The translations under genes were made by a program, and so were the position numbers. Of a stretch of 64,000 nt of DNA, positions 39,444-49,238 are shown piece by piece; position 1 is the first letter of the stretch; each line of letters begins with the position of its first letter. The notes beneath the pieces are model-generated. The model did not search any database, was not told the origin of the DNA, and was given only the letters and a program-made list of their open reading frames with translations. Location of the stretch: sequence record NC_048046.1, one strand, 5' to 3'.

Positions 39444-42400
39444 ATGACCGACTACACGCCGGACCTCCACCTTCCTCTGGTCGCGCCGAACCAGAACCAG
39501 AAGGAAGCCACGATCAACACTGCGCTGGCCATTCTGGAGTCGGCGGCGAATGATTCGGTCACGATCTCGCTGATCTCGGGCAATCTGACGCTCAACGACG
39601 ATCAGTACACGAAGTATTTCCATCACCAGTTCGTCGACCACCTGTCCTCGCGCATCGTTTCGCTGCCGGCGACGCGACGCTGGTTTGCTGTTGAGAACCT
39701 CGGCAGCGGCCCGATTACCTTCAAGGTAACGGGCTCGACTGGCCTGTCCGCAGAACTGCCTTCCGGCAAGATCGGCCTCGTGGTTTCTGATGGCGTCGAT
39801 GTGCGTTTTGTGGTCCCCGATCCCACTGGCGGCCTGGGTCTGCTGCGCGATCTCTCTGACGTTGACGGCATCCCTACGGATGGGCAACTGCTGCGCTGGT
39901 ATGCGGCTGATAGCCTGTGGAAGCCTTGGACCCTGACTTTGCCCTTCAAGGGCTTGAGCGACGTCCCGAGCACGTACGTCGGGCAGGGCGGCAAGCTGCT
40001 GGCAGTGCGTAACGATGGCAACGGCATCGAGTTTGTTTCCTCGGCCGCCAACATCAACTCGTTCGTCGACCTGGACGACACGCCCAATAGCTACAGCGGG
40101 TCCGCCAATTTCACCGTCAAGGTCAACTCCGCCGGCACGGGCCTGACCTTCGCGCTGCCGCGCCTGACCGAAGCTGCCGATTTCCCCTCGAACTACACGG
40201 GAGCCGCCAACAAGCTGCTGCGCGTCAACTCGACCGCTAACGGAGTCACGTTTGACGTCCTGAAGGTCGTCGACCTGAGCGACGGCCCTGGCGCGCCGAC
40301 CGCGCCTAACGCCCTGCGCTATATCCGCGTCAACGCCGCTGGCGATGGCTGGGAGTACGCGACGGGCACCGGCGGCCCTGACCACTTCACGCAACTCGAA
40401 GACACGCCCGACAGCTACACGGGCAAGGCTAAGCAATTCCCCCGAGTCAACGATGCCGAAGACGGCCTGATCTTCTCGACCGTCAAGTTCATCGATCTCG
40501 CCGACGGTCCGGGAGACTTCACGGGCTCCGCGAAGAAGTTTCTGCGCATCAACAACGCGGCGAACGCGATCATCTACGATGCGCCTAAGGTTGAAGACCT
40601 CGCGGATGGTCCCGGCGCGCCGGCGGTTGCACATGCCAAGAAGGTGCTGCGCGTCAACACGGCAGGTAACGCGGTTGAGTACATTACGCTCAAGATCACC
40701 GATCTGGGCGGCTTCCCTTCATCGTTCACCGGCCAGGGCGGCAAGTACCTGATCGTCAAGGGCGATGAATCTGGCATCCAGTTCACCACGGCCTCGTACA
40801 CCACGAGCTTCCTCAATCTGACCGACGTGCCGGCTGAGTCTTATGCTGGGCTCGCGGGCCGTGCCTTCGTGGTCGACCCCACGGCTACGGGCCTCATCCC
40901 TGGGCCGATCATTCCGACTCGCTTGGGTCAACTGGCTGACGTCGAGGACGGTACCGGTACGCCGCAGCAGGGCGACTTCCTGCGCTGGATTGACGGTGTC
41001 TGGCAAGCCGATCCGTTCCCGGTCTCGGGCGGAGGGGGCGGCGCGACCGAATTGGCGGAACTGACGGACGTCGAGATCGCCGCCTCGGACCCGCCGCAGG
41101 ATGGGCAGGTGCTGGGCTTCAGCGCCGCCACCGGAAAGTGGACGCCGACGACCGTTCAGACGACGGTCGTCTCGGACTTGGACGATTTGACTGACGTCAC
41201 GCTCACGTCGCCGGTCAACGGCCAGATCATCGTCTACCGTGACGGTGAGTGGGTCAACGAAGACCCTGCCAGCCAGGGCGTGCCGTCGAACGGTTCGCAT
41301 ATCTACTGGCGCCTCCTGCTGCACGCGACCGACGGCTCGACCGTCCAATACGGCATCCAGGAAATCCAGTTCAAGCAGTCCAAGTTCGGGCCGGATTTGG
41401 CAAACGGTGGCACGGCCTCGGCGAGCACGGACGAATTCGGTACCGTGAGCGGCGCGTTCGACAACGTCATCAGCGGCGCGTGGTTCTCGACCTCGGCCGC
41501 AGACGGTCAATGGATCAAGTACCAGTTCCCGACGCCGGCCGAAGTCCGCTACATGACGATCCAAGGATCGCAGTCGCAGCCTAACACGTCGCCGTCGGCC
41601 TTCTCGGTTCAGTGGTCGGACAACAACGCCGACTGGACGACGGCTTGGGAAGTGACCGGACAGACCGGTTGGGCGCCGGGCCAGACGCGTGAGTTCCACG
41701 CGCCGATCGACCTCTACTTCACCGATCTGGCCGACGCGCCGCAATCGTACATCGGGCAGGCCGCCAAGCTGCTGCGCGTCAAGGGCGACAGTACCGGCCT
41801 GGAGTTCTTCTCGCTGTTCGTGCCGACGACCCTCGGTCAACTGTCCGACGTCGAAGATGGTACGGGTACGCCGCTGGATGGCTACGTCCTGACCTATAAG
41901 GACGGCGTATGGCAGGCTGAGCCGCCGGCGGGCGGGCCGGGCGGAGGCGGTGGCGCGAGCACTTTCCTGGACCTGACCGATACGCCTAACGTTTATGCCG
42001 GCGAGGGCGGCAACGCCGTGCGGGTCAAGATGACCGAGGACGGCCTGGAATTCTATGCGCCCGGCACGGGAGGAGGTGGAGGCGGCGGCTGGCGTGGCGG
42101 CTGGGCGGCGGGAGCCGAGCAGGTCTTCATCACCTTTGAAGATGGGACTCTCAATCCAGCCTTCACCTATGATGCGGCAGGTTTCACGGTGGTTAGCCAG
42201 CCGGATTCTGTTGTGGGTACTAACTTCGCGTTGAAGTTCCGCCCGATCGGAGATGGTGCGACCTGCTATTGCGAACTTCCAATCGAAGACGTGGTCAATG
42301 CAGGTGATTTGACGGTACGCTATAAGGTTTCCTCGGAAAGTCCGGATTTCTTCCGCATCCGCCAGGACGGTGTGCAAGTTCATCAGGACAGCGGTAACAC

Positions 42401-44444
42401 CGGGGTCTACGAGACGTTTACGCTGGCAACGACGGGTGATCACACCCTGCGCTTCTCCTACAGCAAGGACGGCTCGCTAGCGATCGGCGCTGATACTGTC
42501 TACATCTCGCAAATCAGCTACTATAAGACCTTGACCAATCCTTATGTTTATGGGGATACGGTCTCGTACCAGGGTGCGTATTGGTTCTGCCGCCAAGCCG
42601 GAACCAGTGAGGCGCCGGGCGCGGGTGACGACTGGATCAAGCTCCCGGAATATCTCGCCAATCTTAAGGATGTCGACCTCTCGACCCCGCCTTCGAATGG
42701 ACAGGCGCTCGTTTTCGACGGGGTCTCGAACAAGTTCAAGCCGGGCACCGTTTCCGGAGGAGGAGGCGGTTCGGGTAACACCTATAACATCGGCTTGGCG
42801 CCTCGCACGCGCGTTCATCGCGTGGCTGTTCAATCGATCGCGACTGCGACCTGGACGGCAGTTCAATGGGACGCCGAAGCGGAAGATGCGGTCAACGCAT
42901 TCTCCAGCGGCACGAACACTCGGATTACTGTGCCGGCCGGTGTAACCAAGGCACGTGCGACGGGCTACGTGAATTGGGGCACCAACCTGAGTGGAGCCAG
43001 CATCGTCGGCGCTGCGTTGCGCCGCAATGGTGTCGAGACCGGGAGCACGGGAGGAAGCCGGATTGTTGCCTCGCGCAGTGGTCAGTACGAGTCGCACCTC
43101 AACTTCACGTCGGAATGGTTCCCGGTTACGGCTGGGGATTACTACGAGCTGTTCGTCCTTCAACAATCAGGGGTCAACGCCAATCTCAACGGCCCGGTCA
43201 CCAACTTTGGCGAGAACACCTATCTCCAATTTGAATGGGATGACGGGACGCCGACTTCGGCTATCGAAGCGGGCGACCTCCATGCTGCGCACCAGGGATG
43301 GCGGGTAATCGTCACTGACAGCCAAACGGGGACGTTTGCCTCGCTCTCGGAACTGAAGTTCTACGATCGATCAGGTGTGCAGATCGCCACGACGGGCGGT
43401 AAGGTCTTTGACACCAACTCGCACGGTACCTATCCGGCCTCGCAGGCTTTCGATGGGAACACTTCTACGTTGTGGTCGTCGCTCCAGCAAACTTCGACTG
43501 ATGTGCTGGGAGGGCCGGGCTATATCTTTGCCTCGGCCGTTGACGTTGGATCAATCAAGATCACTTCGACTGATACGAGCTTTAATACCACCAATTCGCC
43601 CAAGAATTTCGCTGTCCAATACACCGATGACGATGGGGCAACTTGGCTGACTTACGCTTATTTCAGCGGGCAGACTAGCTGGGGTGACCGAGAAGAACGC
43701 ACTTTCGTCCTCCCGCTGATCGGTACGGCTCGGGTGGGGGGCGCGCGTAAGATTAGCGAACTCCAAGACGTCGCGATCGGTACGCCCAAGCACGGCGATC
43801 TGCTGACCTACGATGGTTTTTCACAGGTCTGGAAGCAGAAGACGCGTTGGGGGTATTCGCCGCCGAAGGCTGCCGATTTCCCGACCCTTTTGGGATCGGT
43901 TTCCCTCACCCTGACCGATGATGATGATGTCGGACTGATGGTTGATTGCGGCCAAAGCACCTTCGGTGACATCCAGCGCATCGCCGTAAAGCCCCTACCC
44001 GCAGGCCTCGCCGATTTTACGGTGACTGCCAAGATCGTCGATCACCTGCTGCCGTACAACTACAACGGTGTCGGGCTCATCATGCGAGAATCCTCGTCTG
44101 GTAAGATCGTGATGTTCGGTATTGAGAACAACACTAACGGCAGCACGACTCAATCGATTCGGAAGCTGCGATATAGCCGCCTGCCCGGCTTGACGGGGTT
44201 TACCAGCAACGTCTATTCGGATTTTACGCCTTCTGGGGCTCAGTGGTTCCGCCTCAAGAGCACCTCAGGCCTATTGACGGCTTGGGTTTCCGTCGACGGA
44301 AAGATGTGGCGGCAAATCTATCTGGAATCGAATGGCGGGTCCTTCAATTCTGGACCTGACCAGATTGGCATTGGCTGCTCGCTCAATGCCAACTACGCAC
44401 TAAACCCTATGTTCTCGATCCCCTATTGGGATCAGAGCTTCTAA
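39444..44444 (+). CDS. Long tail fibre with repeats and carbohydrate-binding-like domains
   Basis: QNQKEATINTAL start; many LxDLxDxPxxYxG repeats; two discoidin-like segments (YWRLL...EIQF, WRVIV...ELKF). Confidence 0.88.
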   Translation: MTDYTPDLHLPLVAPNQNQKEATINTALAILESAANDSVTISLISGNLTLNDDQYTKYFHHQFVDHLSSRIVSLPATRRWFAVENLGSGPITFKVTGSTGLSAELPSGKIGLVVSDGVDVRFVVPDPTGGLGLLRDLSDVDGIPTDGQLLRWYAADSLWKPWTLTLPFKGLSDVPSTYVGQGGKLLAVRNDGNGIEFVSSAANINSFVDLDDTPNSYSGSANFTVKVNSAGTGLTFALPRLTEAADFPSNYTGAANKLLRVNSTANGVTFDVLKVVDLSDGPGAPTAPNALRYIRVNAAGDGWEYATGTGGPDHFTQLEDTPDSYTGKAKQFPRVNDAEDGLIFSTVKFIDLADGPGDFTGSAKKFLRINNAANAIIYDAPKVEDLADGPGAPAVAHAKKVLRVNTAGNAVEYITLKITDLGGFPSSFTGQGGKYLIVKGDESGIQFTTASYTTSFLNLTDVPAESYAGLAGRAFVVDPTATGLIPGPIIPTRLGQLADVEDGTGTPQQGDFLRWIDGVWQADPFPVSGGGGGATELAELTDVEIAASDPPQDGQVLGFSAATGKWTPTTVQTTVVSDLDDLTDVTLTSPVNGQIIVYRDGEWVNEDPASQGVPSNGSHIYWRLLLHATDGSTVQYGIQEIQFKQSKFGPDLANGGTASASTDEFGTVSGAFDNVISGAWFSTSAADGQWIKYQFPTPAEVRYMTIQGSQSQPNTSPSAFSVQWSDNNADWTTAWEVTGQTGWAPGQTREFHAPIDLYFTDLADAPQSYIGQAAKLLRVKGDSTGLEFFSLFVPTTLGQLSDVEDGTGTPLDGYVLTYKDGVWQAEPPAGGPGGGGGASTFLDLTDTPNVYAGEGGNAVRVKMTEDGLEFYAPGTGGGGGGGWRGGWAAGAEQVFITFEDGTLNPAFTYDAAGFTVVSQPDSVVGTNFALKFRPIGDGATCYCELPIEDVVNAGDLTVRYKVSSESPDFFRIRQDGVQVHQDSGNTGVYETFTLATTGDHTLRFSYSKDGSLAIGADTVYISQISYYKTLTNPYVYGDTVSYQGAYWFCRQAGTSEAPGAGDDWIKLPEYLANLKDVDLSTPPSNGQALVFDGVSNKFKPGTVSGGGGGSGNTYNIGLAPRTRVHRVAVQSIATATWTAVQWDAEAEDAVNAFSSGTNTRITVPAGVTKARATGYVNWGTNLSGASIVGAALRRNGVETGSTGGSRIVASRSGQYESHLNFTSEWFPVTAGDYYELFVLQQSGVNANLNGPVTNFGENTYLQFEWDDGTPTSAIEAGDLHAAHQGWRVIVTDSQTGTFASLSELKFYDRSGVQIATTGGKVFDTNSHGTYPASQAFDGNTSTLWSSLQQTSTDVLGGPGYIFASAVDVGSIKITSTDTSFNTTNSPKNFAVQYTDDDGATWLTYAYFSGQTSWGDREERTFVLPLIGTARVGGARKISELQDVAIGTPKHGDLLTYDGFSQVWKQKTRWGYSPPKAADFPTLLGSVSLTLTDDDDVGLMVDCGQSTFGDIQRIAVKPLPAGLADFTVTAKIVDHLLPYNYNGVGLIMRESSSGKIVMFGIENNTNGSTTQSIRKLRYSRLPGLTGFTSNVYSDFTPSGAQWFRLKSTSGLLTAWVSVDGKMWRQIYLESNGGSFNSGPDQIGIGCSLNANYALNPMFSIPYWDQSF

Positions 44445-45094
44445 TGAGCCGCTTCTGGAAGGCCCAGAAGTGGCACCCCAACAAGACCTGCTTCATCGTC
44501 GGTGGAGGCCCAAGCCTTAAGGGCATGGACCTCTCCGGCCTTGACGGACGACTCGTAATCACCGCGAACAACGCCTACCAGTTGGTGAAGGAGCCTGACA
44601 CGATCTTCTTCGCCGATACGCGTTGGTGGCGCTGGCATCGTGAGCGCATCGGCGAGTTCCGAGGACGGATCGTGACTGCGGCGTCGTCGCGCGACTTTGG
44701 TGATGGCCGCGTCTGTCGTATGGGTCGTGACTACAGCTTTACCAAGGACGAGGGACCTGCACTCGCTCGGGACCCCTCGATGCTGTGTGGTGCCGACAGT
44801 GGCTATATGGCGATCAACCTCGCCTACCACTATGGCGTCAGCCGCATCGTGCTCCTGGGCTTCGACATGGGTTTTATGGGCGGCGAGGCCCACTGGCATC
44901 CGGACCATCCGATCGCCACGCCAGAGTCACATTACGTGGATCGATTCGGGCCAACCTATCCCGCCTTGATCGCGGCCTTGAAGAAGGAAAACGTCGAGGT
45001 GCTGCGCAGCACGCCTTCGCGGCTGGACTTCATTCCGGAAGTCGCCTTGGCCGATGCCCTCGAACTGCCGGATCGATTCCACGGCCGTCTCTAG
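44444..45094 (+). CDS. GT29/Maf/MptE-like nucleotide-sugar transferase domain protein
   Basis: FIVGGGPSL, SGYMAINLAYHYG..RIVLLGFDM. Confidence 0.7.
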   Translation: MSRFWKAQKWHPNKTCFIVGGGPSLKGMDLSGLDGRLVITANNAYQLVKEPDTIFFADTRWWRWHRERIGEFRGRIVTAASSRDFGDGRVCRMGRDYSFTKDEGPALARDPSMLCGADSGYMAINLAYHYGVSRIVLLGFDMGFMGGEAHWHPDHPIATPESHYVDRFGPTYPALIAALKKENVEVLRSTPSRLDFIPEVALADALELPDRFHGRL

Positions 45095-45143
45095 GGCGCC
45101 AGTATTCTTGACACGTTAACCCTATTCGCCTTAAGACCTAGGG

Positions 45144-45977
45144 ATGCCCAAGGCTTACGTCCATCTCCTGGAAGCGGTCCACTACCGCCGCGATGCGTTC
45201 GTCAACGGCTTCGCGCGTCTGGGCTATATCGTTGAGCGCGGCACGCCGGCAGTCCCGTTGGCGCCCGATGATGTCGTGGTGATCTGGAATAAGACGGCGC
45301 GTTCTGCCCAGGCTCTTCGGATGGCACGCAAGAACGGTGCGGCCGTCCTCGTGGCCGAGAACGGTTACTTCGGGAAGGACGCTAACGGGCACCAGCCCTA
45401 CGCCCTAGCGCTCGACGGGCATAACGGATCAGGGCGTTGGTATGCGCCAGATTCTTCGCGTCTCGATCGCTTGAATGTACCGTTCGAGCCCTTGCGTGCT
45501 CCTGGGATGGGCAAGGTTCTGATTGCCGATCAACGCGGCATCGGTAGCCAAAAGATGCGCTCGCCGCCCAAGTTCGGCGTGCAGATGTTGGAGCGCCTGA
45601 CGCACCATCAGCCGTTCCGCCAGATCGAGCTTCGAGCGCATCCCGGACGCCATGCTGCCGGGGTGTCGCTGGAGCGTGACCTGGAGGATTGCGACGCGCT
45701 TGTGGTCTGGTCTTCGAATTGCGCAACTCTCGCGCTTCAGAAGGGCATTCCCGTCCACTACTGCGCACCCGCGATCGCCTCGGCCGGCGCCGCTAAGCCA
45801 TTCATGCCGAGCTTGCGCGCCTCCTTCACGGAGACAGAGCGCCGTGAGGCCTTTTCCAATATGGCCTGGGCGCAGTGGTTCCTAGACGAGATCGCCAGCG
45901 GCGAGGCGATGCGCACACTGCTTGACGTATATGCGGGCAAGCTTCCCTCCGTTTCACCGGGCATTGACCTCGCATGA
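45144..45977 (+). CDS. KpsC/KpsS-like GT-B glycosyltransferase
   Basis: ENGYF and LVVWSSNCATLALQKGIPV motifs. Confidence 0.6.
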   Translation: MPKAYVHLLEAVHYRRDAFVNGFARLGYIVERGTPAVPLAPDDVVVIWNKTARSAQALRMARKNGAAVLVAENGYFGKDANGHQPYALALDGHNGSGRWYAPDSSRLDRLNVPFEPLRAPGMGKVLIADQRGIGSQKMRSPPKFGVQMLERLTHHQPFRQIELRAHPGRHAAGVSLERDLEDCDALVVWSSNCATLALQKGIPVHYCAPAIASAGAAKPFMPSLRASFTETERREAFSNMAWAQWFLDEIASGEAMRTLLDVYAGKLPSVSPGIDLA

Positions 45978-46819
45978 TCCGACCGCCTCATAACCCTCTA
46001 TTCCAGCCGCCGGTCTGCATCATCCAGCGTGGTAAGCCCAAGTCTCAGATGCTCGCGGAAGCGATCGTCAAGGGCGCCCGTGGCGGCAAGATCATGGTCG
46101 CGCCGCATGTGAGCGATTTGCCGGCTGGACATGTCCCGGTCGTGATCGGGGCGCACCCCACGACCATCGAGACGCTGCGAGCGCTCCACTACAACGGGCA
46201 CCCCTACGTCTACGTGGATAACGGCTACTTCCATCCGTACAAGAGCGGCGGCTATTTCCGCGCCACCTGCAATGCGCTCCAATGGGTCGATCGCTGGCCC
46301 TACGATCGCGCCGAGGCGCGAAACCGCTGGGAAAGTCACAAGCTGAAGGTCGCGCCCTGGCGGGAAGAAGGCGACCATGTGCTGATCGCCCTTCAGACTC
46401 CGACTTGGTATCAGATGATGGGCGTCGATCAGGACGCCTGGGTGCGCGATGTCCTGGAGCGTCTGACGCCGTGGACGAAGCGTAAGATCATCGTCCGCCA
46501 GAAGCCGCTCAAGGGCATCCAGGTCCCTCCTCTGGAGGAAGAACTGAAGAACGCCTGGGCGGTGGTCGCCTATTCCTCGAACGTCATGCTCGACGCATCC
46601 CTTCAGGGCATCGCTGTCTTCCCGCAGCGGTCGTGCGCCGCGCAAGCCCTGGGCACCGGACAGCTATCGCGTATCGAGGAGCCTCGCCGGGTGTTCGACC
46701 GCGAAGGCGTCTATGAAGAACTCGCAGCAGCGCAGTGGACCGTCCCCGAGATGGAATCCGGGAAGATGTGGAACGACCTGCGCTGCCAGTACCAGCCTGA
46801 ATTTGGACGTCTTGCATGA
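45974..46819 (+). CDS. KpsC/KpsS-like GT-B glycosyltransferase, paralog
   Basis: DNGYF and VVAYSSNVMLDASLQGIAV motifs. Confidence 0.6.
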   Translation: MIRPPHNPLFQPPVCIIQRGKPKSQMLAEAIVKGARGGKIMVAPHVSDLPAGHVPVVIGAHPTTIETLRALHYNGHPYVYVDNGYFHPYKSGGYFRATCNALQWVDRWPYDRAEARNRWESHKLKVAPWREEGDHVLIALQTPTWYQMMGVDQDAWVRDVLERLTPWTKRKIIVRQKPLKGIQVPPLEEELKNAWAVVAYSSNVMLDASLQGIAVFPQRSCAAQALGTGQLSRIEEPRRVFDREGVYEELAAAQWTVPEMESGKMWNDLRCQYQPEFGRLA

Positions 46820-47601
46820 CCCTTCACGTCTTCGTCGGCTACGACATTCGCGAGCACGCCGCCTGGATGGTGTGCCGCGACAGTCTGCTCAATCCGATCG
46901 CCTACGAAGGCGACGCGCCGCTGGATGTCCAGGTCCATCCTGTCTCCCACCGTGAACTGCGCCGCGCCGGCGTCTTCGATCGTCCCTGGCGAATCGACGA
47001 GAAGGGTCAGACCTGGGACGAGCGAGACGGCCGCCCGTTCTCGACCGAGTTCAGTCACTCGCGTTTTCTGGTCCCGTCTCTGGCGCAAGCGATGGGTTTG
47101 ACCGGGCAAGTCGTCTTCGTCGACTGCGATTTCATGTTCATGCACTCGGTGGTCGACATGGTCGATGCGCTCGATCCGACCAAGCTGGTGTCAGTGGTCA
47201 AGCATGACTTCGAGCGGATCGCGGCCGGCACGAAGATGGATGGCATGTCCCAGAGCCGCTACTATCGCAAGCTCTGGTCGAGCCTGATGGTGTTCAACCT
47301 CGATCACGAGGATGCACACCTCTTCCATCCGCACTACGCCAACACCTGGGACGGGTCCAGCCTGCACGGCTTCCAGCCTCTGACGGATGCTGAGATCGGC
47401 GACATCCCCAGCGAGTGGAACCACATCCCCGGCCATTCCTCGGCGAACGAAGTCCCGTCTGCGATCCACTGGTCTTTCGGCGGTCCCTGGATGCCGGCCT
47501 ACGAAAAGGCAGCATGGGCGCCGCTGTGGCGCGCTCGCTACGTCCAGGTGATGCAGGATGCCTTGACCGACGATATCTCCACCACTTTCCCGATCCTGTG
47601 A
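46816..47601 (+). CDS. GT-A fold glycosyltransferase (GT8-like)
   Basis: FVGYD, STEFSHSRFLVP, DxD (FVDCD), RKLWSS, EWNH. Confidence 0.8.
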   Translation: MTLHVFVGYDIREHAAWMVCRDSLLNPIAYEGDAPLDVQVHPVSHRELRRAGVFDRPWRIDEKGQTWDERDGRPFSTEFSHSRFLVPSLAQAMGLTGQVVFVDCDFMFMHSVVDMVDALDPTKLVSVVKHDFERIAAGTKMDGMSQSRYYRKLWSSLMVFNLDHEDAHLFHPHYANTWDGSSLHGFQPLTDAEIGDIPSEWNHIPGHSSANEVPSAIHWSFGGPWMPAYEKAAWAPLWRARYVQVMQDALTDDISTTFPIL

Positions 47602-47603
47602 CC

Positions 47604-48110
47604 ATGCTGATCAGTACCCAATATCAGGCGCTCAATGCGCAACTCCACGCGGACATCGCGACCTACGGCGCCGGCGGCTGGCAGTGGATCGGTCCTGCCC
47701 TGAAGTTCGCTGAGCATCTGGGCGTCCGCACCATCCTCGACTATGGCTGTGGCAAGGCGAGCTTCGGCGAATGGACGCCGGGCGATTATGTCGTGCTCCC
47801 CTATGATCCGGTGACCTATCCCGGTGAGCGTCCGGCTTGCGGCATGGTCGTCTGTCTCGACGTCATGGAACACATCGAGCCGGATTGTCTGGATTCGGTC
47901 CTGCGCCACATCCGCTCGAAGGCTGAACGCGGCGCTTTCTTCGTGATCGCGATGCGGCCGGCTCAGAAGACGCTGGCCGATGGGCGCAACGCCCACCTGA
48001 TCGTGGAGGACGCGAAGTTCTGGATCAACAAGCTCCACGAGCACTTCACGTCTACCGAAATCGTCAACATCGGCCGCCCCGATGAACTGGTCGTGCGTGC
48101 GAAGGTCTGA
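47604..48110 (+). CDS. Class I SAM-dependent methyltransferase
   Basis: ILDYGCGK; DVMEHI. Confidence 0.85.
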   Translation: MLISTQYQALNAQLHADIATYGAGGWQWIGPALKFAEHLGVRTILDYGCGKASFGEWTPGDYVVLPYDPVTYPGERPACGMVVCLDVMEHIEPDCLDSVLRHIRSKAERGAFFVIAMRPAQKTLADGRNAHLIVEDAKFWINKLHEHFTSTEIVNIGRPDELVVRAKV

Positions 48111-48112
48111 GT

Positions 48113-48988
48113 ATGGGTTACGGCGACAAGTTGATGGCGATCGGCGACGCCTGGGCGATGCACCAGCGCGATCCGATGAAGCGGAAGGTGGCGATCGGTG
48201 ATGGCCGCAACATCGATAAGACGGACCTCAATCTGACTTGGGGCCTGGAGCATTTTCTAGCGACTCAGGAAGAGGTCGACGCTGGGTATCCGATCAATTG
48301 GGTCATCAGCTACCCAGGCAATCGCCCCTACATCGACTACGGCGCCGTGCGCTCAGCGCTGGTCAACCAAGGCATTCGGCTCATCAAGCCGCGCAAGATG
48401 ATCGGAAAGCTGGGGCGCTACATCTTCGATCTCTCGTATCGTCCGCGCCCGGCTCCGATCAAGCTAACGCCCGAGGAAGAAGCCATCGCCGCCGAATGGG
48501 CCGCCAAGGGTCCGTTCGTACTGATCGAAGGCTTCACCAAGGCACGCGCCTCGCCGAACAAGCAGTGGCCCGTGGATCGATTCCGCGAAGTCGCCCGCAC
48601 GCTGAAGCGGGAAATCCCGGTCTATCAGATCGGTGCGGCCGGCACGATGCCGCTGCTGCCGAGCTTGCCGCAAATCCGCCCCGAGAGCTTCCGCCAGTCT
48701 CTGGCATACCTGAAGGCGGCTTCGCTCTACATCGGCCCCGAGGGCGGATTGCATCACGGCTCTCGTGCGATGAACACGCGTGCGGTGGTGATCTATGGCG
48801 GGTTCACGTCCCCTCTCATCACGGGGTACCCCGACCTGCACATCAATTTGACCGGGGACAACGAGGGCCGCGCCTGCGGTTCGAAGAACGAGTGCATGCA
48901 CTGTACCAAGGCGCTCCAGAGCATCTCGGCTGGAGAAGTCCTGGCGCACGCTCGTCGGCAACTGGAGAAGGTCCATGCTGGACTCTAA
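48113..48988 (+). CDS. GT9 (heptosyltransferase-like) glycosyltransferase
   Basis: GYGD, NKQWP, YIGPEGGLHH motifs. Confidence 0.8.
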   Translation: MGYGDKLMAIGDAWAMHQRDPMKRKVAIGDGRNIDKTDLNLTWGLEHFLATQEEVDAGYPINWVISYPGNRPYIDYGAVRSALVNQGIRLIKPRKMIGKLGRYIFDLSYRPRPAPIKLTPEEEAIAAEWAAKGPFVLIEGFTKARASPNKQWPVDRFREVARTLKREIPVYQIGAAGTMPLLPSLPQIRPESFRQSLAYLKAASLYIGPEGGLHHGSRAMNTRAVVIYGGFTSPLITGYPDLHINLTGDNEGRACGSKNECMHCTKALQSISAGEVLAHARRQLEKVHAGL

Positions 48989-49238
48989 GCCGGGCTATCA
49001 CGTCGCTGAAATCCCCAAGGGCGTCCTGGGCGAACCGTCCAAGATCGCCGAAGAACACGCCGAGTTCCAGGACGCGGTCTCTCAGGGCATCAAGATCATG
49101 GCCCTGGTCGAACTGGCGGACCTCTACGGCGCCATCAAGAAGTACCTCGAAAAGCACCATCCCGGCGTCACCTTCGACGACCTGGACGCCATGAGCTTCG
49201 TCACCGAAAGGGCATTCATCAATGGCCGCCGCGCTTAA
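48975..49238 (+). CDS. Small protein, possibly MazG-like NTP pyrophosphohydrolase
   Basis: KIAEEHAEF...ELADL acidic pattern. Confidence 0.5.
   Translation: MLDSKPGYHVAEIPKGVLGEPSKIAEEHAEFQDAVSQGIKIMALVELADLYGAIKKYLEKHHPGVTFDDLDAMSFVTERAFINGRRA

Follow-up and report, generated by a model that had tools for sequence, protein, structure and literature searches.

In mycobacteriophage virion modification, methyltransferases are said to stand alongside the phage glycosyltransferases (GTs). As far as the same work (Freeman 2023) is related in PMC12619734 and PMC11256854, mycobacteriophage capsid and tail-tube proteins are glycosylated by phage-encoded transferases; the F1-cluster phage Maravista has its GT genes close to the right end of the genome (PMC11256854), and virion glycoproteins have been reported for Xanthomonas phage XacN1 (PMC5852040). 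Phage transferases of this general kind also act on DNA: GT-A (GT8-like) and GT-B enzymes attach hexose, heptose and Kdo to 5hmC, and their gene clusters hold a C5 methyltransferase with 5mYOX, or a hydroxymethylase, among DNA metabolism genes (Pyle et al., bioRxiv 10.1101/2023.12.21.572611). The retaining beta-Kdo transferases KpsC/KpsS (GT107), WbbB (GT99) and KrkA (GT140) have a modified GT-B fold, and the nucleophilic Asp of their QXXXD motif is absolutely conserved and mechanistically essential (PMC10148158, PMC12887879).

Here we describe a cassette of six transferase genes from Caulobacter phage CcrPW (Colossusvirus), whose 308-kb genome is the source of the window, i.e., the whole stretch of 64,000 nucleotides that was analysed. 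A literature search found no paper that treats the cassette; three of its genes are already named in the annotation of CcrColossus. The features, in positions of the window, are:

39444..44444, + strand, distal tail protein of 1666 aa, homologous to phiCbK gp101; upstream neighbour and candidate acceptor
44444..45094, + strand, ORF1 (gp453, 216 aa), Maf/GT42-like transferase for CMP-activated ulosonic acids
45098..45112, + strand, promoter-like motif GCCAG-N5-TTGAC, 32 nt 5' of the ORF2 start
45144..45977, + strand, ORF2 (gp452, 277 aa), KpsC-fold, beta-Kdo-transferase-like GT
45974..46819, + strand, ORF3 (gp451, 281 aa with the upstream start), paralogue of ORF2
46816..47601, + strand, ORF4 (gp450, 261 aa), GT-A, GT8-like glycosyltransferase
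47604..48110, + strand, ORF5 (gp449, 168 aa), class I SAM-dependent O-methyltransferase
48113..48988, + strand, ORF6 (gp448, 291 aa), GT9 heptosyltransferase-like
48975..49238, + strand, small ORF of 87 aa that overlaps the ORF6 stop and is kept in CcrColossus; no family match

The first-pass annotation had placed six ORFs between 44444 and 48988, the first overlapping the stop codon of a fibre gene, and both statements hold: all six are co-directional on the + strand, and the ATG of ORF1 (44444-44446) and the TAA of the tail protein have one A (44444) in common. From ORF1 to ORF6 neighbouring genes overlap by 4 nt or stand 2 nt apart, except for the 49 nt after ORF1, and this tight operon has tail and virion genes upstream and a lysis cassette downstream. 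For ORF3 we favour the start at 45974 over that of RefSeq (46049) because the N-terminus is conserved. The upstream tail protein carries lectin-like domains (F5_F8_type_C, Pfam, 2.7e-14), and its phiCbK homologue, gp101, is a virion protein (Table 2, PMC3556154). None of the six cassette proteins has a transmembrane segment, and ORF2, ORF3 and ORF6 are basic (pI 9.0-9.5). The position of the cassette is kept in CcrColossus, CcrSC, CcrBL9 and C1-like phages, with amino-acid identities of about 50%.

The motif that had been noticed before ORF2 is present and belongs to a recurrent set. There are 24 exact copies in the whole genome as against 0.7 expected, and 23 copies with at most one mismatch in the window as against 4.6 expected; the copies point the way transcription runs, and the one upstream of ORF2 is kept in CcrColossus. 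From gene position and this recurrent promoter-like motif we infer late expression of the cassette, in which ORF1 would be expressed by read-through of the tail-protein message and ORF2 to ORF6 would additionally be served by their own copy of the phage promoter motif.

ORF1 had been labelled GT29/Maf-like, a call that stands with some refinement. Its AF2 model (pLDDT 94) ranks Maf (5mu5) best among PDB structures (E 4e-6, TM 0.65), followed by Cst-II and Cst-I of GT42 (Cst-II, E about 1e-5 to 1e-4; by profile, 1.5e-4), and GT29 structures are more distant matches. ORF1 matches phrog_4603 at 2.5e-51 and the Pfam MptE-like family at 31.3 bits, under the cut-off of 34.6. It has the fold of the Maf flagellin nonulosonic-acid transferases (PF01973) and of Campylobacter Cst-I/Cst-II, and alignment with Cst-II shows the N-terminal G-x-G-P-S-L nucleotide motif, an Asn, an Asp and the S-G..G-x-D core in both proteins; its conserved residues are GGPS, N42, D58, D141, H150 and H155. 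Its 216 aa make up the catalytic core alone, with neither the flanking domains of Maf nor the lid and membrane tail of Cst-II, and its conserved histidines (H150, H155) are placed otherwise than the catalytic His of Maf/GT42. Genes of the ORF1 type are phage-borne and lie in morphogenesis regions, e.g., P1 PmgP, D3-like Pseudomonas phages and jumbo phages; XacN1 has two homologues.

The description of ORF2 and ORF3 as KpsC/S-like is upheld by structure and paralogy. The ORF2 model (pLDDT 94) matches KpsC-N with a structural Z of 12.8, WbbB with 12.4 and KrkA with 9.3, as compared to 8.6 or less for generic GT-B enzymes, and ORF3 is its paralogue (27% identity, E 5e-10), so placed that the adjacent pair echoes the two GT modules of KpsC. 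As in beta-Kdo transferases, ORF2 has the modified GT-B fold, the Arg/Lys-x-His-Pro CMP-binding motif and the Gln of QXXXD; the Glu of its E-[DN]-G-[FY] segment aligns with the general base Glu66 of KpsC, and Trp48 with Trp42. What ORF2 lacks is the QXXXD Asp, the nucleophile of all characterised beta-Kdo transferases, which is absent from the phage KpsC-like family, in which the HP motif and the general-base Glu are kept: the Asp position is Gly in 85 of 104 ORF2-type proteins and aromatic or Ala in the ORF3 type. In ORF3 the base position is taken by Asp, and Arg-x-Lys-Pro stands where Arg-x-His-Pro is expected, the histidine being replaced by Lys or Trp throughout ORF3-type proteins. Even so, Asp72, Arg164, Ser191, Arg233 and Gln244 are kept across 71 ORF3-type sequences, which argues for selection on the active site and against a dead ORF3. 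The phage proteins are soluble, about 270 aa long, and lack the membrane-anchoring C-terminus of KpsC/KpsS-type enzymes; their scores with Pfam PF05159 are sub-threshold. The family comprises 4,333 clusters at 50% identity, with 19 matches among 185,579 species genomes, and is almost exclusive to phages.

The remaining three assignments, GT8-like, SAM methyltransferase and GT9-like, were likewise sound. ORF4 has invariant D103-x-D105 and H218, weak profile matches to GT8/WbbM and membership of a GT8-flagged Atlas cluster; its homologue in CcrColossus carries the annotation nucleotide-diphospho-sugar transferase. ORF5 carries the DxGxG SAM motif (D46-x-G48-x-G50), matches phrog_24759 at 5.6e-42 and finds UbiG, Hen1 and 3dli, O-methyltransferases, among PDB profiles. 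ORF6 exceeds the cut-off of Pfam GT9 PF01075 (32.2 as against 22 bits), matches TIGR02193 at 3.7e-6, WaaF (1psw) at 1.2e-7 and WaaC at 2.7e-5, and keeps G4-D5, K143, E210-G211 and H215 invariant. Its alignment with WaaF/WaaC spans the half that binds ADP-heptose and takes in the Lys and the G-G-L-H-x-A-A-A segment; ORF6 is shorter than WaaC, WaaF, TibC and Aah, its N-terminus beginning at the G-x-G-D motif. It falls far under the equivalog cut-offs (26 as against 185 bits) and matches the model of the protein-heptosylating TibC/Aah autotransporter heptosyltransferases only at E 0.01.

The gene order recurs as Maf-like, KpsC-like, KpsC-like, methyltransferases, GT9, GT8 in about 100 metagenomic phage or prophage loci, a recurrence that is new here; in these loci the cassette is as a rule flanked by the major capsid gene on one side and by head-completion or connector genes on the other. 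Genes in the fetched loci were called by a crude procedure, and near-duplicates occur among these loci; with that reservation, 83 of 86 fetched phage loci have an ORF2-type gene, 71 have at least two ORF2/ORF3-type genes, and 69, 56 and 39 have ORF1, ORF4 and ORF6 types; the cassette order is found in 19 further MAG or prophage loci. The nearest large upstream genes (n=56) include those for capsid (21), portal (7), protease (2), connector (2), terminase (2) and tape measure (1), and those downstream (n=89) head-completion (18), connector (8), tail-completion (5) and gp10-like (5) genes. Accessory cassette genes are mostly sugar methyltransferases (19 FkbM-type, about 16 Methyltransf_11/12/23/25, three C-methyltransferases), with DegT and SDR enzymes among the others. 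In one phage, KdsB-like, cupin and KdsA-like genes directly precede the ORF2-type gene, and two cassette phages have GmhA/HldE-like heptose-pathway genes; CTP_transf_3, NeuB and DAHP_synth_1 are all absent from CcrPW, and Caulobacter has all three. The general rule is that the cassette is embedded in a virion assembly operon, and the coupling to a tail-fibre gene that had been proposed applies in Colossusvirus and Bertelyvirus only.

The first-pass annotation had left a choice between a methylated glycan on the virion and remodelling of host LPS. Since about 100 phages carry the cassette among their head and tail morphogenesis genes, its product is most likely a methylated glycan on virus particles, and the methyltransferases and the Maf-like enzyme lean the same way. 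In full, the cassette would carry out late cytoplasmic glycosylation of virion proteins with host CMP-Kdo, ADP-heptose and UDP-hexose, a scheme to which we give an even chance. The sugar nucleotides would be drawn from the LPS-core and flagellin supply of the Gram-negative host, and the product would be a short, methylated, acidic glycan on one or more virion structural proteins. ORF1 would take an ulosonic acid in CMP-activated form, either Kdo or a nonulosonic acid (pseudaminic acid, for example), and move it onto Ser/Thr of the acceptor protein directly or onto a glycan as its cap; its closest solved relative, Maf, is a flagellin O-glycosyltransferase, which would count for a protein target. 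ORF2 and ORF3, as split analogues of the two KpsC modules, would attach Kdo-type residues and are probably inverting, because the Asp of the covalent intermediate is absent, with Glu/Asp as base and His/Lys as acid. ORF6 would attach heptose from ADP-heptose, ORF4 hexose from a UDP-sugar, and ORF5 would O-methylate the product. The predicted enzyme identities and intact active-site motifs count for such a pathway, as do the lack of transmembrane segments and the mycobacteriophage and XacN1 precedents, and the argument for the virion rests on gene position and enzyme family.

Several observations pull away from virion glycosylation. No single constant neighbour stands out as acceptor across the loci, the immediate upstream genes being variously connector-like, collagen-like, capsid or small unknown proteins; a few cassettes adjoin lysis genes, not capsid genes; and phiCbK-type relatives, whose virions are similar, do not have the cassette. 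The folds of GT9, GT8 and Kdo transferases are moreover the classical toolkit of LPS-core and capsule-linker synthesis, the three basic proteins resemble the membrane-peripheral KpsC and KpsS, and the donors would be LPS precursors. The enzymes might then remodel the host envelope from the cytoplasmic side of the inner membrane, with nascent lipid A-core, a phosphatidylglycerol-Kdo primer (as for KpsS/KpsC) or another lipid-linked glycan as acceptor, against superinfection or the trapping of progeny on debris; for cassettes in prophages within alphaproteobacterial contigs of 0.4-1.2 Mb, seroconversion is plausible. We consider this rather unlikely. In most loci the cassette stands between capsid and head-completion genes and is not associated with lysogeny modules or Gtr-type membrane proteins, the six proteins include no membrane-spanning or flippase component, cellular genomes are almost without the KpsC-like family, and the nearest relative of ORF1 glycosylates protein. 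In CcrPW the cassette lies between tail and lysis genes and is apparently late, so that newly made LPS would hardly have time to appear on the cell surface.

Flagellin is the normal substrate of the Maf family, and phiCbK-related phages use the flagellum and pili, which would favour another soluble target (a non-virion phage or host protein, such as flagellin or pilus components that serve as receptors, or a small molecule); alternatively, part of the cassette may be catalytically dead, as the Lys or Trp of ORF3-type proteins and the missing nucleophile of both paralogues could indicate. Such outcomes seem unlikely: besides the residues kept in ORF3, many small siphophages carry the cassette, always in the assembly module. 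A Kdo/heptose/hexose glycan on a modified phage base, serving restriction evasion, is very improbable, although GT8-like enzymes and Kdo and heptose adducts have their precedent in phage DNA hypermodification (bioRxiv 10.1101/2023.12.21.572611), three of the enzymes are basic, as would be fitting for work on DNA, and CcrPW encodes a C5 cytosine methyltransferase (genome 134.5-135.5 kb). That gene lies about 25 kb from the virion-module cassette in an opposite strand block, T4 beta-GT-like DNA transferases are absent among the fold matches, and searches for Tet/JBP dioxygenase, ThyA and hydroxymethylase-family genes were negative in CcrPW and in four cassette-bearing phage genomes at least 94% complete (the Tet_JBP search having no positive control).

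The cassette resembles the clusters of Pyle et al. in its LPS-related phage GTs and in the proposed recourse to host pools for Kdo, heptose and hexose donors, but their partner genes were not found beside it nor, mostly, elsewhere in cassette-bearing genomes. With the mycobacteriophage system, as far as PMC12619734 and PMC11256854 present it, the cassette would have in common phage-encoded GTs, capsid or tail proteins as targets and a cytoplasmic site of action. The hosts here are Proteobacteria, unlike in the mycobacteriophage case, and the enzymes belong to types (CMP-ulosonate, heptose, GT8) that characterise Gram-negative LPS, whereas the mycobacteriophage families and sugars differ; and where the GT genes of Maravista lie near the right genome end, the cassette is set within the assembly operon.

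The window matches Caulobacter phage CcrPW (NC_048046 / MH588545, 308 kb, genus Colossusvirus) at 100% identity, the window coordinate being the genome coordinate minus 62,000, and CcrColossus at 87.7%. The first-pass annotation described a cassette of six genes, the first of which overlaps the stop codon of the fibre gene, and this layout is borne out: six + strand ORFs span the interval listed below, and the ATG of ORF1 and the TAA of the tail protein gene have one base in common.

Features of the cassette region
39444-44444 (+), tail protein of 1666 aa, a homologue of the phiCbK virion protein gp101
44444-48988 (+), six cassette ORFs, with 4-nt overlaps or 2-nt gaps and a single 49-nt spacer after ORF1
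downstream of the cassette, an 87-aa ORF, an alpha-CTD/aaRS-like gene, then endolysin, holin and spanins
13706, 15227, 19147, 28566, 38456 and 45098 (+), copies of GCCAG-N5-TTGAC
40343, 50108, 55278 and 61486 (-), copies of GCCAG-N5-TTGAC

RefSeq names the six genes gp453 to gp448, and three of them carry names in the 2012 GenBank annotation of CcrColossus (sialyltransferase-like, nucleotide-diphospho-sugar transferase and family 9 glycosyltransferase); the main text of the accompanying paper (Gill et al. 2012) does not mention the cassette. No paper on the cassette was found in our literature search, in which the query "CcrPW" gave unrelated plant papers among the matches listed. The RefSeq start of gp451 (46049) drops about 25 residues, among them the stretch QRGKxKS that homologues conserve; the better start, and the one in closer agreement with those homologues, is the ATG at 45974, where the gene overlaps the stop of ORF2 (window 45974-46819). 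A PADLOC search gave no match and hence nothing that points to defence or anti-defence genes, and an NCBIfam search gave weak GT9 matches and nothing else. In the distal tail protein, F5/8 type C (discoidin-like) carbohydrate-binding domains at about residues 657-755, together with a CBM5/12 match that is weak and lies near residue 1040, suggest a glycan receptor.

The promoter-like GCCAG-N5-TTGAC that had been placed before the second gene is present at 45098-45112 and is no chance match, the motif being far commoner than expected: allowing up to 1 mismatch, 23 copies lie in the window where 4.6 are expected, and 24 exact copies lie in the CcrPW genome where about 0.7 are expected. The 15-nt motif extends to the consensus GCCAG[GT]A[AT]TCTTGACac. 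Its + strand copies span the + strand structural block (21-107 kb of the genome), its - strand copies lie inside the - strand replication block (112-146 kb), and nearly all are intergenic and point along the local direction of transcription; the motif looks like an undescribed middle or late phage promoter or activator site. CcrColossus retains copies ahead of the tail-fibre gene and ahead of ORF2; CcrSC and CcrBL9 have none at the cassette, and there ORF1 and ORF2 overlap. A generic sigma-70 scan of the cassette found nothing on the + strand, and there are no convincing terminators inside it. ORF1 is therefore probably carried on the tail-gene message and ORF2-6 probably have an extra internal start. 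None of the public RNA runs searched for the window holds the stretch, one freshwater metagenome having 6% of its words.

The enzyme types proposed in the first-pass annotation largely survive closer comparison: the GT29/Maf-like reading of ORF1, the two KpsC/S-like genes (ORF2 and its paralogue ORF3), the SAM methyltransferase (ORF5) and the GT9-like protein (ORF6) are all upheld, and ORF4 is a candidate GT8-like enzyme. ORF1 matches PHROG 4603 ("alpha-2,3-sialyltransferase") at E 2.5e-51 and Pfam MptE-like (PF01973) at 31.3 bits, below the gathering threshold of 34.6, and most of its homologues are flagged PF01973 in precomputed data. Its AlphaFold model (pLDDT 94) is closest to the Maf flagellin glycosyltransferase 5mu5 (E 4e-6, TM 0.65), followed in order by Cst-II (1ro7, E 2.6e-5) and Cst-I, the archaeal MptE kinase and GT29 sialyltransferases; the 5mu5 and 1ro7 matches give it the Maf/GT42 fold. 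A profile of 28 ORF1 sequences reaches Campylobacter Cst-II (GT42) at 1.5e-4 through GxGPSL, Asn, Asp and SG..GxD segments, ORF1 GGPSL pairing with Cst-II GNGPSL, so that the N-terminal nucleotide-binding motif is present. This alignment ends before the Cst-II general base H188; two near-invariant histidines, H150 (79/80) and H155 (78/80), are candidates for the catalytic His. Solitary ORF1 homologues include PmgP of phage P1 and genes adjoining head-tail connector genes in D3-like Pseudomonas phages. Single-sequence searches of PDB sequences with ORF1 and ORF6 gave nothing useful.

Sequence searches with ORF2 were less productive: PF05159 (Capsule_synth) gave 12.8 bits (gathering threshold 20, E 0.084), a PF05159 search of the whole phage genome was empty, no family match of ORF2 was significant, and a profile search did not find KpsC, the link to which comes from fold comparison and hhalign only. 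The ORF2 model (pLDDT 94) matches well only retaining beta-Kdo transferases, namely KpsC-N (6mgc, Foldseek E 1e-6, Z 12.8, rmsd 4.2 over 228 residues), WbbB (Z 12.4) and KrkA (Z 9.3), versus Z of 8.6 or less for generic GT-B folds; the model thus has the predicted modified GT-B fold of beta-Kdo transferases (GT107). ORF3 is a paralogue of ORF2 (27% identity, E 5e-10).

Residues of ORF2 aligned with KpsC-N of E. coli CFT073, whose sequence was taken from its genome (hhalign, ORF2 family profile)
W48 with W42
E72 with E66, the general base
D129-Q130 with D155-Q156
R164-x-H166-P167 with K192-x-H194-P195
G134, invariant, with D160, the nucleophile

The first-pass annotation had named missing catalytic residues as something that would refute its reading. 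In ORF2 the nucleophilic Asp of the QXXXD motif is absent, Q130-x-x-x-G134 falling on KpsC Q156-x-x-x-D160 in a profile alignment rather than a superposition, but the general-base Glu is aligned and the CMP-binding HP motif is kept, H166-P167 (on KpsC H194-P195) being invariant in the alignment of ORF2-type proteins. The 175 KpsC-fold members from the fetched loci split into two subtypes. The ORF2-like (O2) type has E-N-G-Y, H93, R131, G134, R-x-H-P, S191, R233 and Q244, and the ORF3-like (O3) type has D at the base position, S131, R-x-K/W-P, S191, R233 and Q244. ORF3 itself has Lys-Pro in place of HP, the O3-type residue being K in 52/71 and W in 16/71. The nucleophile position is Gly in 85/104 O2-type proteins and F/Y/A/W in the O3 type. 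Because the nucleophile loop of neither subtype has a conserved acidic residue, we infer an inverting mechanism: ORF2 and ORF3 would catalyse a single-displacement reaction in which Glu/Asp is the base and His/Lys the acid, on the model of GT-B enzymes that use CMP-sialic acid. As a side observation, W42, R45, E66, Y93 and D160 of CFT073 KpsC (L006:21743-23770) agree with the numbering of PMC10148158; position 94 has a Tyr, the HP motif being H194-P195, and the general acid "His94" of that paper (discussion and Figure 10) should probably read His194.

ORF4 has an invariant D103-x-D105 and H218, candidate metal ligands of a GT-A fold, and weak profile matches to WbbM (1.4e-3) and, over the DxD region, to the GT8 structure 5gvv (0.05). 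It has no Pfam match, GT8 (PF01501) included, at E up to 0.1; one ESM Atlas neighbour cluster is 12% PF01501. ORF5 has the invariant D46-x-G48-x-G50 (motif I) and D68 (motif II) of class I SAM methyltransferases, matches 3dli (2e-6) and UbiG (6e-5) in PDB profile searches, scores under the cut-off for Pfam Methyltransf_23 and resembles small O-methyltransferases. ORF6 exceeds the gathering threshold of Pfam GT9 (PF01075; 32.2 bits, threshold 22), and its profile reaches WaaF (1.2e-7) and WaaC (2.7e-5) over the ADP-heptose-binding C-terminal half, with the conserved Lys and GGLHxAAA aligned. Its G4-D5, invariant in the family alignment, resembles the G-D of WaaC and is a candidate for the N-terminal catalytic Asp (WaaC D13).

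The cassette occupies the same slot, between tail protein and lysis genes, in CcrColossus, CcrSC, CcrBL9 and C1/J4/RB23-type phages, at about 50% amino acid identity, and in reduced version it occurs in Brevundimonas jumbo phages; phiCbK-type phages are without it, having just two genes between tail protein gp101 and endolysin gp104. The ORF2 family counts 735 relatives in a 90%-identity protein collection and 4,333 cluster representatives at 50% identity (E up to 1e-3, 2,418 of them reaching 1e-10), and 126 IMG/VR contigs bear a relative. Among 185,579 prokaryotic species (one genome each) there were 19 matches, an undercount because a single peptide pattern was used; all are on MAG contigs, mostly of Alpha- and Gammaproteobacteria and some in prophage-like contigs of 0.4-1.2 Mb.

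Homologues of ORF1-ORF6 (O1-O6) in 86 fetched loci, from simple ORF calling and iterated HMMs; gene calls are crude and some loci near-duplicates
O2-type gene, 83 of 86
two or more O2/O3 genes, 71 of 86
O1, 69 of 86
O1 followed directly by an O2/O3 gene, 60 of 86
O4, 56 of 86
O6, 39 of 86
O5, 16 of 86

The commonest order is O1, O2, O3, methyltransferases, O6, O4, and the unlabelled genes within cassettes are chiefly FkbM-type and other SAM methyltransferases, sugar C-methyltransferases, DegT aminotransferases and SDR enzymes. The nearest large upstream genes (n=56) include matches to capsid (21), portal (7), prohead protease (2), connector (2), terminase (2) and tape measure (1) families, collagen-like repeats (6) and a few lysins, and those just downstream (n=89) include head-completion (18), gp6-like connector (8), tail-completion gp17 (5) and HK97 gp10-like (5) genes. 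Precomputed maps read capsid, cassette, head completion in one locus (L009) and connector and head completion, cassette, tail completion and tail tube in another (L012). In at least six loci (L016:7946-9154, L030:7502-9148 and four others) the gene directly before the cassette encodes a collagen-repeat protein, some of these with CBM5/12-like ends; such proteins are possible fibre or decoration components and might accept the glycan. A universal acceptor gene beside the cassette was discarded, the immediate upstream genes forming several unrelated clusters, as was a 188-aa neighbour in locus L071 whose likeness to the CcrPW tail protein (39 residues, E 2e-4) is too weak.

Some loci carry genes for the donor sugars. 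In an uncultured phage (L068:6100-7876, IMG/VR 3300033417_000053) three genes directly upstream of the O2 gene make up, by their similarity, a phage-borne CMP-Kdo supply line: a cytidylyltransferase of KdsB type (KdsB-like, matching E. coli KpsU at E 8e-21), a cupin, and a Kdo-8-phosphate synthase resembling KdsA. GmhA-like, PfkB (HldE kinase-like), cytidylyl/adenylyltransferase-like and transaldolase genes by the cassette in two others (L010:4029-7765, L022:11147-12507) suggest phage-encoded ADP-heptose synthesis. The CcrPW genome has no CTP_transf_3, NeuB or DAHP_synth_1 match and Caulobacter vibrioides has all three. The most likely donors for the cassette are therefore those of the host: CMP-Kdo (or CMP-pseudaminic acid), ADP-heptose and UDP-hexose.

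What the cassette glycosylates is a matter of weighing. The leading reading, which we hold at about even odds, is that its targets are virion proteins; it is favoured because the cassette repeatedly sits among structural genes at insertion points that differ between phage lineages, because sugar methyltransferases abound in it, because membrane components are absent and because the nearest relative of ORF1, Maf, is a protein O-glycosyltransferase. Remodelling of the host envelope would fit enzymes of LPS and capsule types, and three of the proteins (ORF2, ORF3 and ORF6) are basic; however, the integral membrane flippase and transferase of a Gtr-type or O-antigen seroconversion module were not encountered, and none of the seven proteins has a transmembrane segment, their hydropathy over 19 residues peaking at 1.5 or less. 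We consider envelope remodelling rather unlikely. Glycosylation of DNA seems improbable: Kdo and heptose on 5hmC are real elsewhere, but CcrPW has no PF12851 (Tet/JBP) or PF00303 match, and neither a Tet/JBP nor a hydroxymethylase partner was found in four cassette phages whose genomes are at least 94% complete (the PF12851 searches being without a positive control). Some other soluble target, or partial loss of activity, is also unlikely. Outside the window, the replication module of CcrPW encodes a C5 cytosine DNA methyltransferase (G000:C1:134516-135496, -), for which no Tet/JBP or ThyA-family partner was found.

To our knowledge, phage-encoded virion glycosylation has been documented biochemically mainly in mycobacteriophages and giant algal viruses. 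Going beyond CcrPW, we tentatively propose that in many phages of Proteobacteria the capsid or tail bears a methylated Kdo/heptose glycan resembling the LPS core, made by a phage-specific cassette from host LPS precursor pools, and that the two KpsC-fold enzymes found a fourth, nucleophile-less (probably inverting) and almost virus-only family of Kdo transferases. If so, virion glycosylation would be common among phages and no peculiarity of mycobacteriophages: a cassette conserved within the assembly operons of more than 100 proteobacterial phages, with a core enzyme family of thousands of sequence clusters, would make it a general feature, and such a glycan could affect phage stability, adsorption, recognition by immune systems or predators, and phage engineering. 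Caulobacter with CcrColossus or CcrPW offers a tractable laboratory system for questions of virion glycosylation and Kdo-transferase mechanism.

The precedent for virion glycosylation by phage genes, as passages of PMC12619734 and PMC11256854 cite it, lies in mycobacteriophages (Freeman 2023), in which phage-encoded transferases glycosylate capsid and tail-tube proteins; for the CcrPW cassette the case comes from gene context. An analogy of position with mycobacteriophage glycosyltransferase genes beside the capsid was dropped, those of the F1-cluster phage Maravista lying near the right genome end (PMC11256854). Xanthomonas phage XacN1 is reported to have at least two virion glycoproteins, credited to other glycosyltransferase genes (PMC5852040); its ORF375 and ORF374 (L112:6956-8265) are tandem ORF1-family genes followed by three large hypothetical proteins. 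KpsC-fold proteins without the QXXXD nucleophile bear on the evolution of double-displacement beta-Kdo transferases and could show, as a natural experiment, whether an inverting reaction is also possible on that scaffold. In the characterised families GT99, GT107 and GT140 the QXXXD Asp is always present, being absolutely conserved and essential (PMC10148158, PMC12887879), whereas by profile alignment the ORF2/ORF3 family does without it.
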